This document shows positions 42,178-64,000 of a stretch of 64,000 nt of DNA, piece after piece (within the stretch, counting starts at the first letter, position 1; each line of letters opens with the position of its first letter). The notes under the pieces were generated by a model, which did not search any database, was not told where the DNA came from, and saw only the letters and a program-made list of their open reading frames with translations. The position numbers and the translations under genes were made by a program. Where the stretch lies: the IMG/VR virus record IMGVR_UViG_3300044625_001067, positions 1-64,000 of that record; one strand, 5' to 3'.

Positions 42178-42244
42178 TGCCCAAGATAAACCCACTGGCT
42201 AACCCTGGTACGGTTAATCGCAAGGCAATCCCTCCGGAGGGGAA

Positions 42245-42309
42245 GGTGCGTGGCTTAGTGGTAAAGCTGGTCCGAAAGGCTGAACGCAGGTTCGATTCCT
42301 GCCGCACCA
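42245..42309 (+). ncRNA. tRNA-like element with GAAA tetraloop replacing the anticodon loop
   Basis: GGTGCG/CGCACC; canonical D arm GCTT-AGTGGTA-AAGC; GCAGG-TTCGATT-CCTGC. Confidence 0.7.
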
Positions 42310-42310
42310 C

Positions 42311-59296: not shown

Positions 59297-59839
59297 TTAA
59301 CTTGCGGGCTTTTCCGGCGAAGAGCCAAGTTCCTGGGATGCGGCTAGATAGTCTTCGATGGCTGCATGAAAGTTGGATTCAAATTCAGCTATCGTTTCGC
59401 CGTGAAACGAGATAATGTCGTCGATGTCTAGGACACGACCAACAATAATCTTGTCTTCAGTATCGAAGACCATACTGGCTGTGTAGTCTTTGTAGGCCAT
59501 GGAATTGATCATGGCTTTCCGCACCCATGTAGAAGAATACGGTTCAGTAAGCATGTACAAACCTTCCTCAAACTTCCCAGTAGAGAGAATGATTTGGAGG
59601 GCTGTTTGAGTTTGTTCGTGAAGTTGCCTGTACTCCTCTTCCTGTGACTCGGTCAATTCTTCTAGGTCTTCTCCAGTCAGAATTTCGTGTATGTCTCCGA
59701 TAACCCAACTGTTACCATACGGTCTTTTCGGGTCTATTTCCGGAGCACCGAATTCACAGTTTCTCCACCCAACGTGCATTCTTCTCAGCAGTTTCAGGTG
59801 GTTTTGAGTTAGGAGAAAGAAGGTCTTGCTGTTAGTCAT
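59297..59839 (-). CDS. phage domain fused to truncated HicB antitoxin domain
   Basis: C-terminal 'YKDYTASMVFDTEDKIIVGRVLDIDDIISFHGETIAEFESNFHAAIEDYL...PEKPAS*' is HicB N-domain-like and ends before the DNA-binding domain. Confidence 0.75.
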   Translation of the reverse strand: MTNSKTFFLLTQNHLKLLRRMHVGWRNCEFGAPEIDPKRPYGNSWVIGDIHEILTGEDLEELTESQEEEYRQLHEQTQTALQIILSTGKFEEGLYMLTEPYSSTWVRKAMINSMAYKDYTASMVFDTEDKIIVGRVLDIDDIISFHGETIAEFESNFHAAIEDYLAASQELGSSPEKPAS

Positions 59840-59853
59840 AACAAAAATGGGAA

Positions 59854-59965
59854 TGGGACCGGCAGGACTCGAACCTGCAACCGCGCCTTTAAAAGAGGTA
59901 ATTTAATTGCTGATGTATCTTTGTCAAGATAACTTTTCGTGCTCTACCAGTTGAGCTACGGTCCC
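59854..59965 (-). tRNA. tRNA-Lys(TTT) with 39-nt insertion in the anticodon stem
   Basis: GGGACCG/CGGTCCC; CG[39 nt]CCT-CTTTTAA-AGGCG; GCAGG-TTCGAGT-CCTGC. Confidence 0.8.
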
Positions 59966-60696
59966 GTATTTGATCCGAAAACTACCTGGAGCGATATTGA
60001 AAGTTTTTTCTCAGCCCCCTGAGCTACTCTCCAATGTTAATGGGTTCAAAGGTTAAGTTAAACCACTCCCCGTCAGAGTTACAGAACAAGAGCTTAGAGT
60101 CGCTATCGTCGGGGTAATACCAGATCAGCATGTTCTTTAACGATTTGTTTTGGGAGTTTTTGGGCAGGGTCTCACCTCGCTTCAGTCGATACAATACGTC
60201 ATGCCCTATCCCTTTACTCGGCACGTCTAACCGTATGCCCTTGTCACCGTCAAAACCTGCTTCAGTGGGTGTCATATCTTTTTGTTAGGTCTACGTTCGC
60301 TTGGCAAATTACTTGGATCGATAATAAAGGTGTTTAGCCCCCAAGTTCTAGAGCCTATATGAGTCCACACAAACATTCAGCATCAACACTTTTCTTTTGG
60401 GCAGGTTTTCACCGGGAAAAGAGTAAGGATGTAACTTCACACCCGTTTGATTTTCAGGGTTAGCATAGAAACAATTGTCATAGTAGTAGCTCGGAAGATC
60501 ATACTCGTCTTCGGGGTCGAGAACTGCTACAATGTCTTCCTTAATGCGAACTCTCCCTTCTACCTTAGTGAGGGGTATGTGATCGGGAGGTAAAGATAAG
60601 AGTACACCAACAACAACTTCCATGTTATCCGGGAAGTCGCTCAGTCTTTCCTTCAGGTCTTTTACTTTCATTCTGTTTACAAAGTCTGAGTTTAAC

Positions 60697-60746
60697 TAGA
60701 TAGTTGTTTTTCCCAAGAGAGTTAGGGTAAATCGCTGAACTATCTA
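60697..60746 (-). ncRNA. hairpin with TCAGC/AAAAACA internal-loop motif
   Basis: TAGATAGT-TCAGCGA...AAAAACA-ACTATCTA. Confidence 0.65.
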
Positions 60747-60764
60747 TGTTTGCCGAAGGCAAAG

Positions 60765-60886
60765 TCGAAGAGGCAAGATTCGAACTTGCGTATGGCGGTT
60801 CCTTTTGCGTATTGGGTAATTGCTGAATTACCTAAGCTAGGTAATCTTTTTGCATTACCACTGCCTAACCACTTGGCTACTCTTCG
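60765..60886 (-). ncRNA. tRNA scaffold whose anticodon loop is replaced by an AAAAAG-hairpin-TCAGCAATT module
   Basis: CGAAGAG/CTCTTCG; GCC-AAGTGGTTA-GGC; GTGGT/ACCGC; GCAAG-TTCGAAT-CTTGC. Confidence 0.8.
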
Positions 60887-61759
60887 GTTTTTCGCACCGC
60901 TTTGCTGGGTGGAGGTTAAGGGGCGAGGAGTGGAACCTTGAGCTCCACATCCGTATCATAGGTTGAGGGTGCTAGGGGTAAACGGACTCAAGCAGAGACC
61001 CTCACTCGGGGCCTATCGCGGGGCACCACTCATATACTCTCGAAAGGCGTTCATAAAGTACCTTACGTCCTCCTCGTAAGATGTGTCAGGGTCGTACCAC
61101 GAGAAGGGGACTTTTTGCGATATCTTCTTGGAGAAAATAAGGTCATACTTGGCTTCATCGGAGAGCTTAGACTCGTAGATTGAGTTGGCCTCCCTGTACA
61201 CTTTGCTTAACTCCTCAAAGCCCTCTACCTCCTCGTTCGAGTCCAAGGCACCTTCATACCACTCTTCGAGGGACTCCACAATTTCTCCAAGCCTTGCGGC
61301 GTAGGTGTGTTGGTCGTCCCTCAGTAAACTGTCACGAAAAAAGCGCAATTGACTCAGGGGTTTGTTAAACTTCCACATTGCTTTAGGGCTAACTGAGAAA
61401 GGAGGTATCCCCGAGAAGATGCTGTATACTGGGGTGTTTTCCATACGTGAACTATAGCGGTTTTGCTGAGCGAAGGAAAGGGTGAAAACCGAACCGCTAG
61501 GGGCGGTTAACCGCCCTGGCTCAAATTTGTTACTCGTCGAGTCCCCTTATACAACTCGATAACTTCACCATCTTCCGACACTCTTACGTCGTAATGGCGG
61601 TACTCGGTTGGTATTTCGTGTCCAACTAAGGGTGTGAAGTCTCTTAGAAAGTTCTCCCAAGAAATAACATTGTCTAGGCCACGACTTCGTAAGTTTTCTA
61701 CAAGACTGTCGTACTCCTCCCGCAAAGAAGAGGAAAAGGGAGCCCACTCGCTATGCGAT

Positions 61760-62137
61760 TCACTTGGTTGACCTTGCATACAAATTCGACAGTAGCAGAA
61801 GCAGAATGAGTGACAAAATGGACACAGAGCCTAAGATTACGATTGGGCTAAACACTGAGAGCCATGGCCAGGTTATTTGCCCCGTTAATTTCAACCCGAG
61901 GAGGAGACCCTGGGCTGTCATTAACGAAACTGCGAGATTCTCAAACATTAGTTATTTCTCATGCGAAAGTAGTTGAAGAATCATCCAAAGGGCTCCCAAC
62001 CCAAGTAGAAAAATTGGCACAAGGGTTGGTGAAAGCACTGTGAGCCAGGGCCAGGAAACCTGACCCGTTACTTTCATAGTCATGAATACGGTTTGCAGAA
62101 CGATGCAGAGGGCACCCGGCAATTTGATCCAGATCAT
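61760..62137 (-). CDS. two tandem paralogous small membrane proteins (61952-62137 and 61760-61948)
   Basis: 'KVTGQVSWPWLTVLSP' vs 'KLTGQITWPWLSVFSP'; first overlaps the DUF2828 stop. Confidence 0.7.
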
Positions 62138-63612
62138 GCTCCTTCAGCAAATACGGCACCGACAGCGTCGTACCTTTCAGTGTAAACAGCGTCACGCATA
62201 GCCCCTACAGGCGTAATTACCCCGCCAGTAAGCACAGCTTTCAGGATTGAAGGGCTGCACCCGGAGACCAGGCAAGTTCCCGTGTCGTGCATTTTCATAG
62301 GTACGTTGCCGCTAGAGTTAACATTCCAGAAGACAAGTTCCGGCAAGGAATACCCAGCTTGAGCGTACTTGATTCGCACCGCCTCAAAGTTTGTCACTGA
62401 GTTGTTTCTGCAGCAGGAATCAAACTGCATGTCTGAGACAATGATGAGCTTGCGCGGCATTTCCCCCTCAGGAATATGGTTCATCGTGGCGGTAGCCAAC
62501 ACAAGATTGAAGACTGCTTGCAGGTCTGTATTCGCACCCCAGTCGGCCCGGCTAAGGTTACGAACACGCTCAGCAACGTTTCTCCCTGTAACCGACTGCA
62601 ACTGCGGTCTTCCGGAGAAGGTTAGGAACTTATCCTTCCATGCCCCGGTGTTACGCTCAGCGATGTACATCGCCAGCGAGATTGAAACCGCCATGGGCAT
62701 GCCGCCGTTATTTCCCATTGATCCTGAGACGTCGGCAATTACCAGGCCGTTCAGCTGCTCTCCTTCCATGTAGTTGGGTAGAGCCTCCCACATTAAGTTT
62801 AGAGTCTGATCGCTCCTCTCACCCCCGTAAAGGTACTTGTGCACGATCTCGTAAGGGTAGATCGTACCGGCATTGATTTTTGCCTCACCTTTCTCTACCG
62901 AGTCAAGGTAGGATTGGTAGCGGTCGCCGTCGCGCTTGGCGAAAGCTTTACGATACATGAAGCCTGCCCGAGAAGGCAACTTGCTATAGTCAATGCTTTC
63001 CCACTCACGGGCACACATTGGCTGCTCAACAATCTTGACTTGTGACCTGAGGGCAGTCAGTGCCTTGCGGTACTGCCTCTCGGTCCAACCCATTGCTTCG
63101 GCAATTTTTCGGCCAATCCTCTTAGAGTCCTGGCTGGAAGCGTTAATGGAAGGCAGCCACTTTGCCAGAAGTGAAACTGACTTTCCAACTTCCGTATTTA
63201 GGTCGGCGTTCAGTTGTGCCTTAATTGCTTCGAGTGCGATGCCCCAAACTAAGGTACCGTCAAGGGCTACCACATCATCCCAGCGACCGTACTGTGGAAT
63301 CAGGCTAACTAGCCTGGCACCAATTGCAGCATCATTTCGAACCAGCTCCTTGAAAACTTCTCGAAAGATCTTTCGCTCTCCCTGGCCCCCACGAATGTCG
63401 CGTGCCCAAAACAAGATTCGAGTTGCGGTCTCAGGGTCTTCTGCGTAGGCAAGGTTGAACAGTCGAGTTGCTTCGCTGATTTTGTCACGGCAAGCTGCAA
63501 TCTTTCCAAAAAGGTCCAGGCACTTAGACTCGGTGGACTTGTATGCCTTTGCACCGTTTGCAGTGGTAGTTTGGTTAAACTCGTTTTCGAGTGCGTTTAA
63601 AAAGGTTGTCAT
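62134..63612 (-). CDS. DUF2828 family protein (TROVE/Ro60-like helical domain + vWA)
   Basis: 'TANGA...ST..CLDLF', 'RDIRGGQGER', 'YGRWDD', 'AKWLPS', MIDAS 'DVSGSM', 'SDMQFD', 'VFWNV', 'VSGCSP'. Confidence 0.88.
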   Translation of the reverse strand: MTTFLNALENEFNQTTTANGAKAYKSTESKCLDLFGKIAACRDKISEATRLFNLAYAEDPETATRILFWARDIRGGQGERKIFREVFKELVRNDAAIGARLVSLIPQYGRWDDVVALDGTLVWGIALEAIKAQLNADLNTEVGKSVSLLAKWLPSINASSQDSKRIGRKIAEAMGWTERQYRKALTALRSQVKIVEQPMCAREWESIDYSKLPSRAGFMYRKAFAKRDGDRYQSYLDSVEKGEAKINAGTIYPYEIVHKYLYGGERSDQTLNLMWEALPNYMEGEQLNGLVIADVSGSMGNNGGMPMAVSISLAMYIAERNTGAWKDKFLTFSGRPQLQSVTGRNVAERVRNLSRADWGANTDLQAVFNLVLATATMNHIPEGEMPRKLIIVSDMQFDSCCRNNSVTNFEAVRIKYAQAGYSLPELVFWNVNSSGNVPMKMHDTGTCLVSGCSPSILKAVLTGGVITPVGAMRDAVYTERYDAVGAVFAEGA

Positions 63613-63618
63613 TTTCTC

Positions 63619-63662
63619 AAGTTGATTGTTTGTTAAGATACAAATTAAAGCTGTATCAACTT
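63619..63662 (-). promoter_or_regulatory. 5' leader hairpin of the DUF2828 gene with ACAGC/AAACA motif
   Basis: AAGTTGAT-ACAGC...AACAAACA-ATCAACTT ending 6 nt before the ATG. Confidence 0.65.
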
Positions 63663-64000
63663 TGCGCTATGGGTAAGGACTCGATGGTCGAATGGTGGAG
63701 GAAATCCTCAAGGGTTTCTGAGCCATCGACACCCAAGCATAGTTAAAACCTAATGCAGTAAATCCTGGGAACTACCAGGAGGCCCGGTACACGAACCTCC
63801 AGCTATAGTCCTCCTCAGGAATCGCGGGGTGGTTGAGGACTTTCTCCAGGACTTTGACTGTGTGTTCAAGGTCGGCGTAGTAATTCTCACCGTAGTCTGT
63901 CGAGCCGAAGAAGAATCCCCCTTCGGTGGGTAGGATCTCCGCAGGGTTTACTGTGTTTGTTTCCGCAGGGGTGTCCCTACTTTCGAGGAGTTTTTTGCAC

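Follow-up and report, generated by a model that had tools for sequence, protein, structure and literature searches.

We examined a 64,000-nucleotide (nt) stretch of the lake cyanophage record IMGVR_UViG_3300044625_001067, hereafter the window, in which a DUF2828 gene and a set of small RNA elements all lie on the minus strand. The encoded protein is probably a divergent relative of the Ro60 ring, and the noncoding RNAs that neighbour it are probably its Y-RNA-like partners. Its predicted fold is similar to that of Ro60, the RNAs have one motif in common, and this motif is associated with DUF2828 genes, in a strand-specific manner, across lineages. Although Ro60/Y RNA particles show conservation all the way from bacteria to humans, what they do is poorly understood, and beyond the canonical TROVE family Y RNAs have, to our knowledge, proved difficult to identify. 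The features of the window that bear on this proposal are as follows (P1, the helix of the motif; R1, a covariance model built from cyanophage copies).

62134–63612, minus strand: DUF2828/DUF7788 gene, 492 amino acids (Pfam, PHROG, AlphaFold2, Foldseek)
63619–63662, minus strand: leader hairpin (R1 match, 51.2 bits; P1 and position kept in cyanophage relatives)
60765–60886, minus strand: tRNA-like RNA S2 (type C), 122 nt (RF00005 match, 41.9 bits)
60697–60746, minus strand: free hairpin H1 (R1 match, 47.8 bits; orthologues in relatives)
59854–59965, minus strand: tRNA-like RNA S1 (type A), 112 nt (RF00005 match, 48.5 bits)
63681–63729, minus strand: possible fifth, degenerate copy (hairpin fold and relatives; low confidence)

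One motif in four RNAs

Read along the minus strand, the order is leader hairpin, DUF2828 gene, about 1.2 kb, S2, 18 nt, H1, 0.7 kb, and S1. The leader hairpin is thus 6 nt upstream of the gene, whereas S2 and H1 are 1.2–1.4 kb and S1 is 2.2 kb downstream of it. A first-pass annotation had reported four copies of one motif on this strand, and re-reading the sequence returned the same coordinates. The insertions carried by both tRNA-like RNAs consist, in order, of an A-rich strand, a hairpin, and TCAGCAATTA; by chance 0.08 occurrences of this shared 10-mer would be expected in the 64 kb, which contains two, a number that none of 100 shuffles reached. The two free hairpins (60697–60746 and 63619–63662) have the permuted order stem-(U/A)CAGC...AAACA-stem. 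The 3′ strand of an inserted hairpin, with the bases that follow it, is the same element as the 5′ strand of a free hairpin with its following bases, and reads AAGAUAC-AU-CAGCAAUUA in S1 and UAGGUAAUU-CAGCAAUUA in S2. The circular permutation that had been proposed is real: P1, the CAGC strand and the A-rich strand occur in both forms, loop-closed on opposite sides in the tRNA-like RNAs and the free hairpins. The stems had been described as paired but completely different in sequence. Their pairing, with compensation, holds up, but they are not completely different, because a consensus 5′-WAGRU-3′ occupies the junction-distal end (read from UAGAUAGU, AAGUUGAU, AAGAUA and UAGGUAAU) while the remaining stem positions vary with compensation.

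A scan of the 64 kb on both strands turned up no further such hairpin whose return strand is A-rich, and there was no copy in the ordinary tRNA clusters of the window (37.6–44.8 kb and 55 kb). Promoter and terminator scans gave sites no more numerous than in shuffles. Rfam searches of the window and 20 related loci, at the gathering score and at E ≤ 10, returned only tRNAs, one permuted tmRNA, and one sub-threshold YrlA match; no Rfam family covers the motif.

The DUF2828 protein is predicted to have a Ro60-like fold

The 492-residue protein matched Pfam families PF11443 (DUF2828, 2.5e-37) and PF25043 (DUF7788, 3.6e-50), and PHROG 850 'RNA-binding protein' at 3e-152. Its AlphaFold2 model (predicted local distance difference test score 93.7 and predicted template modelling score 0.92, from an 88-sequence alignment) comprises an all-helical ring domain (approximately residues 1–277) followed by an alpha/beta vWA domain with a complete MIDAS motif (an adhesion site that depends on a metal ion). 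The MIDAS residues D294, S296, S298, T362 and D394 are invariant across the 88 homologues.

A Foldseek search with this model returned four entries at E ≤ 0.001, all of them full-length Ro60/TROVE proteins: 9kop (Thermus phage phiRo60), 1yvr (Xenopus Ro), and 9nf8 and 9nep (human Ro60). These matches have E-values of 7.7e-7 to 1.3e-5, a probability of 1.00, 526–569 aligned columns, and template modelling (TM) scores of 0.50–0.58, which denote similar architecture and not a close match. The next matches were to vWA domains only, at E > 0.02. A search of the PDB with phmmer gave no match, and the only profile matches there, none significant, were TROVE proteins, aligned at the MIDAS motif. The first-pass annotation had suggested comparing a predicted DUF2828 structure with Ro60, and the full-length matches support a predicted Ro60-like ring plus vWA fold. 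This likeness was in part already known, since homologues carry the SEA-PHAGES label 'Ro-like RNA binding protein', and the PHROG 850 label and a preprint on Bas63 gp130 (below) point the same way.

The gene is widespread, occurring in 702 of 50,697 phage records and having ~7,000 representatives in a protein library clustered at 50% identity, and in most phages examined it adjoins tRNA clusters.

Two tRNA-like RNAs carry the motif in the anticodon stem

S1 and S2 have normal acceptor, D and T arms, and each has an insertion of 39–40 nt in the 5′ strand of the anticodon stem. Their RF00005 matches span positions 1–71 and score well above the threshold of 29 bits; ARAGORN, run on the window, called neither. 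The S1 insertion (39 nt, 59899–59937, exactly where the first-pass annotation had placed it) lies between positions 28 and 29 and comprises AAAAG, the P1 hairpin UAUCUU-GACA-AAGAUA, and CAU-CAGCAAUUAAAUUA; after it comes a mini anticodon hairpin, CCU-CUUUUAA-AGG, at 59886–59898. The S2 insertion (40 nt, 60817–60856) is enclosed by the anticodon stem GUGGU/ACCGC and comprises GCAAAAA, the P1 hairpin GAUUACCUA-GCU-UAGGUAAUU (60826–60846), and CAGCAAUUA. The fold of S2 has a z-score of −2.8, and its orthologues in loci L013–L018 show compensatory changes in P1. The S2 fold also hinted at a GC...GC pair closing the junction; this pair was not general in the 3′-junction frequency table and was rejected.

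Removing the insertion from S1 in silico gives a perfect 73-nt tRNA-Lys(UUU), which ARAGORN calls as tRNA-Lys(ttt). The window has 13 ordinary tRNAs, of which none is a tRNA-Lys, and the sole Lys(UUU)-type body is S1 with its insertion. S2 without its insertion is not a canonical tRNA. Both RNAs lack the combination expected of a functional tRNA, namely an uninterrupted 5-bp anticodon stem, a 7-nt loop with U33, and a conserved anticodon. Among S1 orthologues the anticodon loop reads CGUUUAA, ACGUUAA or AGGUUAA (CUUUUAA in the window), so that U33 is lost and the 'anticodon' shifts.

S1, and perhaps S2, might instead be real tRNA genes with a short removable intervening sequence, S1 being the phage's tRNA-Lys(UUU); the shared motif would then be a processing or splicing site for DUF2828 itself, or for a host RNase plus a ligase such as RtcB. 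The perfect tRNA-Lys left by removal of the S1 insertion fits this explanation, as do the want of any other tRNA-Lys in the window and the RtcB and RNA ligase genes found near DUF2828 in Listeria and Aeromonas phages, but we consider it distinctly unlikely. The insertion is in the stem at 28/29 and not at 37/38 or in the loop, and its site and size fit no known intron class; group I introns occur in cyanobacterial tRNAs, but 39 nt is far below their size. The drifting loops of the S1 orthologues and the failure of S2 to become canonical are equally awkward for it. Furthermore, the module is shared with RNAs that are not tRNAs, namely free hairpins and, in relatives, the terminal stems of tRNA-like bodies, where there is nothing to splice. 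Contigs from four lake metatranscriptomes likewise have the S1 and S2 insertions intact, with no joint, although little weight attaches to this, since rare forms drop out of contigs and the contigs may come from DNA; such contigs attest presence in RNA libraries only and do not give strand, ends or abundance.

The only joint in these contigs concerns positions 60336–60680, whose 345 bases, including an open reading frame (ORF) at 60348–60671 (107 amino acids, no family), are replaced by 18 letters in contigs of three lake metatranscriptomes. This replacement is a strain variant without the ORF and not a product of splicing.

Free hairpins and the leader copy

H1 has P1 strands UAGAUAGUU and AACUAUCUA; the first is followed by CAGCGAUUUA, an inner hairpin CCC...GGG, and AAAAAC. 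Its minimum free energy is −12.8 (z-score −3.2), and orthologues are present in L012, L013, L014 and Synechococcus phage B3. The leader hairpin has P1 strands AAGUUGAU and AUCAACUU, a 5′ junction A-CAGC and a 3′ junction AACAAACA, and the 6 nt between its end and the DUF2828 ATG at 63612 are GAGAAA. All cyanophage relatives, phage B3 among them, keep its P1 and position; because the stem is invariant in these relatives, it shows no covariation.

The leader copy, which had been proposed to autoregulate translation of the protein, is a candidate translational operator, and autoregulation is only consistent with the data. Copies directly before the start codon or ribosome-binding site, or overlapping the start codon, occur in cyanophages, KVP40 and Aeromonas phage LAh_6, and Campylobacter and Bacillus phages have a copy within about 20–35 nt of the start codon. 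The MS2 coat protein, T4 RegA and T4 gp32 are RNA-binding phage proteins with translational autoregulation, and the presumed binding hairpin here, as judged from sequence, likewise abuts or overlaps the ribosome-binding region of the protein's own mRNA. Unlike such operators, many lineages have tandem leader copies up to 500 nt upstream, an arrangement more like that of co-transcribed Y RNAs.

The hairpin at 63681–63729, 20 nt upstream of the leader hairpin, reads UCGAUGG-CU-CAGAAACC...CCAUCGA (minimum free energy −20.6, z-score −1.9). It has CAGA where L004 and L010 have CAGCAAC at the same place, and it has no A-rich return strand; with low confidence, it may be a decayed fifth copy.

Cyanophage relatives and covariation of P1

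No near-identical DNA was found among GenBank phages. Nearest to the window are IMG/VR contigs, along with Synechococcus phages B3 and B23, whose protein is 63% identical; 16 of the IMG/VR contigs have proteins at 75–100% identity, and two more distant relatives are at 31% and 39%. All cyanophage loci have tRNA-like RNAs of 110–128 nt (three types) on the gene strand downstream of DUF2828, together with free hairpins and the conserved leader hairpin, and the positions of orthologous elements are retained between phages at 63% protein identity. The B3 tRNA-like RNA is annotated 'tRNA-Pseudo'. Locus L014 has seven motif-bearing elements within 3.8 kb, and L012, L013 and L014 share a fourth form, a body made of D arm, hairpin and T arm that has P1 as its terminal stem.

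In alignments of 16 cyanophage free hairpins, 99.2% of the P1 cells were paired and five of the eight pairs changed on both sides; for 15 inserted hairpins the corresponding values were 86.5% and four of nine. None of 500 shuffles reached the covariation score in either case. The distal P1 positions A2, G3 and U5 never vary, which means that part of the helix is constrained in sequence. Some copies are followed by U-runs, for example that at L001:7976–8035 in B3. Searched against the window, R1 found only the leader hairpin and H1 at E < 1e-8. The cyanophage version, with a 9-nt frame and a P1 beginning UAGAU, is a divergent sub-type.

The motif accompanies DUF2828 genes in other phages

The flanks of DUF2828 genes in other phages were read by eye and with a fixed descriptor: CAGC.A[ACU], preceded at a distance of 0–3 nt by the end of a P1 strand of ≥7 bp, with the partner strand ≤140 nt downstream or in a hairpin just upstream and with ≥4 A in the 8 nt before the partner. 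The general motif that emerged is a helix with the 5′ strand WAGRY.., then 0–3 nt, CAGC(A/G)A, and an A-rich return strand. In about ten further phage lineages, including the following, it is found next to DUF2828 on the strand of the gene.

Bacillus PBC2: at least 8 copies, spread over leader and tRNA cluster; a sub-threshold YrlA match lies inside one of them
Mycobacteriophage Aegeus: 3 tandem copies directly 3′ of the gene
KVP40: leader copy, with the AUG inside P1
Felixounavirus Andreotti: 4 copies, in tRNA spacers
Listeria LP-124: 3 leader copies; RtcB and RNA ligase downstream
Campylobacter F355: 2 leader copies
Ralstonia RSP15: 3 strict matches, 5 with a relaxed filter
Aeromonas LAh_6: 8 copies, and an unannotated tRNA-like RNA with the same anticodon-stem insertion
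Locus L020: 2 copies

In 18 phage loci the gene strand had 56 matches and the opposite strand 6, against 10.95 expected from shuffles. When 100 kb of LAh_6 were scanned, eight of the 12 gene-strand matches fell in the 4.4 kb adjoining the gene. RtcB and RNA ligase genes lie near DUF2828 in Aeromonas as well as Listeria phages. An alignment of copies from all lineages with MAFFT (A2) had ragged 3′ ends and was not used for pair counts.

LAh_6 (NC_048774) offers a parallel to the S1 and S2 design. Its unannotated tRNA-like RNA (L029:3527–3645) has the insertion GCAAAAAC-hairpin-UA-CAGCAACCC and an encoded CCA. A second unannotated tRNA-like gene is at L029:4945–5015. In this phage two motif hairpins overlap the annotated DUF2828 start (5908), and the true start codon is probably close to 6004. 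A good-looking copy, AGAAUCC-GUU-CAGCAACACCC...UGUUAAAA-GGAUUCU, also occurs among tiny ORFs at NC_048774 39239 (minus strand; L030), 40 kb from DUF2828.

The YrlA match in PBC2 scored 37.8 bits against a threshold of 69 and is enclosed by a copy of P1 plus CAGC. The annotated tRNA-Ile of this phage (3353–3425; L022:3311–3433) matches only positions 6–65 of the tRNA model and is enclosed by a copy of P1 plus CAGCAAUUACAA; given this partial match and the enclosing P1 copy, it is likely to be a Y-like RNA. The PBC2 record annotates tRNAs on the strand opposite to that found by Infernal. Two small ORFs after DUF2828 annotated 'hypothetical protein', Aegeus gp61 (L002:5484–5627) and CDS0026 of Staphylococcus phage CoN_Ph12 (L026:7519–7608), coincide with tandem motif hairpins and are probably RNA genes, not coding.

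A hold-out set of bacterial and archaeal loci

Eighty bacterial and archaeal genome loci, fetched by protein alignment before any inspection of RNA, served as a hold-out set. With the descriptor, 131 gene-strand and 25 opposite-strand matches were obtained, and 69 of the 80 loci were positive. Together with the phage loci, this bears out the enrichment near other DUF2828 genes whose absence the first-pass annotation had named as refuting its proposal. The motif accompanies the gene across Cyanobacteria, Firmicutes, Actinobacteria, Proteobacteria and one Asgard archaeal contig. Most gene-strand copies lie upstream, 77 of the 131 within 500 nt and 28 more within 1.5 kb (105/131).

Columns not seeded by the descriptor were also conserved, with A at CAGC+1 in 91% and A at −1 in 77% of copies; AAAGRYRC-NN-A precedes CAGC, in a fixed 10-nt frame in 91 of 128. 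Element lengths were bimodal, at ~55 and ~105 nt, and a T arm was present in 22 of 55 long elements versus 0 of 73 short ones. The tRNA-like bodies occur in both domain orders, including the YrlA order of T arm, acceptor-like hairpin and D arm. A covariance model built from 26 hold-out elements only (R2) found significant copies in eight phage lineages at E < 0.01, with 33 of 38 matches on the gene strand, and added three tandem copies after the Staphylococcus phage gene that the descriptor had missed.

Such positions might also suit cis-acting signals (such as RNase E, III or P sites, attenuators, or a leader sensing a ligand other than DUF2828) that are linked to the gene only via tRNA operons. 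Thus, most hold-out copies are in the 5′ leader, copies in Felixounavirus, PBC2 and Ralstonia phages are often in inter-tRNA spacers, and U-runs follow some copies. We nonetheless judge this explanation unlikely. The two other tRNA clusters of the window have no copy, while the tandem copies of Aegeus and CoN_Ph12 come directly after DUF2828 with no tRNA gene within ~2 kb. A leader sensor would leave unexplained the copies downstream of the gene and inside tRNA bodies, and the motif follows the gene from Cyanobacteria to an Asgard contig, whose RNases differ.

It is highly improbable that the copies are a small selfish repeat, resembling a miniature inverted-repeat transposable element or a homing-site remnant, that spreads locally and inserts into tRNA genes. 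The variable, multiple copies per locus and the HNH homing endonucleases common in these tRNA regions would be in keeping with such a repeat. The strand bias relative to the gene (131 vs 25, and 56 vs 6) is not, nor is the confinement of copies to a few kb by one gene in a 100-kb genome, nor the retention of orthologous positions at 63% protein identity. Moreover, stems that differ with compensation around conserved loop strands are the reverse of what recent transposition would leave.

Weighing the Ro60/Y RNA relationship

Bacteria and some phages encode Y RNAs within ~2 kb of Ro60 and on the same strand, and these RNAs have tRNA-like domains and a GNCGAA motif (PMC4201824). The Ro60 protein of Thermus phage phiLo binds two upstream Yrl RNAs and PNPase (PMC12135203). 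The DUF2828 system resembles these particles in several respects. The protein combines a HEAT-like helical-repeat ring with a vWA/MIDAS domain; its gene has several small RNAs on its own strand within ~2 kb, in many cases upstream; these RNAs include a class of simple hairpins and a class with tRNA-like D and T arms; next to a terminal helix there is a conserved single-stranded motif rich in purines; and RtcB or RNA ligase genes are nearby in some genomes. It differs in that the protein is matched by Pfam DUF2828 and DUF7788, without a TROVE match, and in that the RNAs have a WAGR helix with CAGCAA instead of GNCGAA/CGAA. S1 and S2 also differ from YrlA in topology. They are non-permuted cloverleaves whose ends lie in the acceptor stem, with the module in the anticodon stem, whereas YrlA ends in the Ro-binding stem and has a loop-closed acceptor stem; the YrlA-type permuted topology, ending in P1, occurs only in relatives (L012–L014, L040, L045, L046, L062 and PBC2). 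Like phage tRNAs, on the other hand, S1 and S2 pass the tRNA covariance model.

A number of results weigh against the proposed relationship. For the protein, Pfam gave no TROVE match at E ≤ 10 (only DUF7788, DUF2828 and a weak VWA_2), the profile search of the PDB linked TROVE chains at E 1.4 only, which is not significant, and the Foldseek superpositions have root-mean-square deviations of 8–9 Å. For the RNAs, canonical GNCGAA is absent from those of the window, and YrlA (RF02553) and Y_RNA (RF00019) gave no match at E ≤ 10 in 59700–64000 and none in L014. The leader hairpin is weak by itself, at −6.4 kcal/mol and a z-score of +0.3, and is no stabler than shuffled sequence. The descriptor seeds CAGC and pairing, so that invariance of CAGC and pairing of P1 in the collected sets result from the way these were gathered; the independent evidence is enrichment, strand bias, position, and the unseeded columns. 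Two lineages, Acinetobacter ME3 and a giant-virus metagenome-assembled genome (L019), have no copy. Finally, R1 is too sequence-specific and only marginal elsewhere (best foreign match, E 0.11), and R2 does not detect the copies in the window itself, even when run without filters. The identity of the window motif with the general motif therefore rests on shared features and on marginal matches in L013 and L014.

On balance, a Ro60/Y RNA relationship remains the probable one. The suggestion that the modified tRNAs and hairpins are Y-RNA analogues draws support, at the level of sequence, from the strand-specific co-occurrence of motif and gene and from the tRNA-like bodies. What the comparison of genomes gives for DUF2828 and the RNAs is co-occurrence, not binding. 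The first-pass annotation had spoken of a new ribonucleoprotein (RNP) system. No description of the RNA motif or of a DUF2828–RNA pairing was found in the literature covered, which did not extend to subscription journals; a wholly new RNP is too strong a term, and a divergent branch of Ro60/Y RNA describes the system better.

A proposed mode of action

Each RNA would present one recognition module, consisting of a 7–11-bp P1 with a distal 5′-WAGR-3′, a (U/A)CAGC(A/G)AUU junction, and an A-rich return strand. The module is mounted in three ways: it ends a simple hairpin as its terminal stem (60697–60746 and the leader 63619–63662); it forms a hairpin inserted in the anticodon stem, on the 5′ strand, of a complete tRNA body (S1 and S2); and in relatives it closes a tRNA-like body as terminal stem, with the domains in either order. 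The RNAs would be co-transcribed with the gene and with tRNA-like neighbours and released by tRNA-processing enzymes, and the protein would bind P1 and the junction. The tRNA-like bodies may hold or present factors that handle tRNA, or may themselves serve as tRNA mimics, and through the copy that abuts the start codon the protein may repress its own translation. During infection the system might serve in quality control of RNA or tRNA, in repair, or in counter-defence.

The last of these possibilities touches on a recent report. Bas63 gp130, a Ro60-like protein by structure, is encoded directly upstream of a tRNA stretch and counters the Ppl defence, and the authors of this 2024 PhageMaP preprint speculated that some Bas63 tRNAs are 'possibly' used as Y RNAs, without defining an RNA partner or motif (10.1101/2024.10.10.617714). 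Bas63 gp130 is most likely a DUF2828 orthologue, as judged from Felixounavirus synteny and not from sequence: Andreotti gp96, which shares 37% identity with the protein of the window, shows this layout too, with the gene directly before a tRNA stretch. The Felixounavirus motif copies differ from the suggestion in the preprint in being in the inter-tRNA spacers, not in the annotated tRNAs. If the Bas63 protein is indeed the Felixounavirus homologue, a counter-defence reading would fit, and because this homologue has a reported anti-defence phenotype the RNAs would be the obvious missing component for its mechanism.

More tentatively, and with doubt outweighing belief, DUF2828 and the P1-CAGCAA RNAs may form a second, very large Ro/Y-RNA RNP branch in phages, prophages and archaeal contigs. 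Its partners would include whole tRNA bodies (here a tRNA-Lys(UUU) mimic), and it would act in counter-defence against tRNA-targeting host nucleases or defences by presenting mimics or recruiting repair enzymes.

Whatever the role, DUF2828, a domain of unknown function, gains a concrete and testable partner in a defined RNA motif with predicted binding determinants. The motif would also account for features of many phage annotations, namely 'pseudo-tRNAs', small ORFs of doubtful status and long leaders. S1 and S2 represent a new build of putative tRNA mimic, in which a full cloverleaf bears, in its anticodon stem, a handle for the protein.

Other features of the window and related loci

Two paralogous ORFs of 61–62 amino acids, at 61952–62137 and 61760–61948 (minus strand), come directly after DUF2828; they match phrog_1374 (unknown function) and are hydrophobic by eye. 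A similar ORF, also after DUF2828, is at ~6500–6690 in L014. Just downstream of S1, a 180-amino-acid ORF (59297–59839, minus strand) matches PHROG 9151 'HicB-like antitoxin' (1.3e-21) over its C-terminal 70 residues. Within the ordinary tRNA cluster, 42244–42310 (plus strand) is a tRNA according to Rfam (40.4 bits) but not according to ARAGORN. The permuted tmRNA found by Rfam (RF04321, 82.7 bits) is at L020:488–745, ~4.3 kb upstream of the DUF2828 homologue of that IMG/VR contig. A box, UUCGGUUUUCACCC, occurs at ~61484–61497 (minus strand) in the window and at ~8153–8168 in L014, in both cases upstream of features that are not homologous, and may be a phage-specific promoter element.

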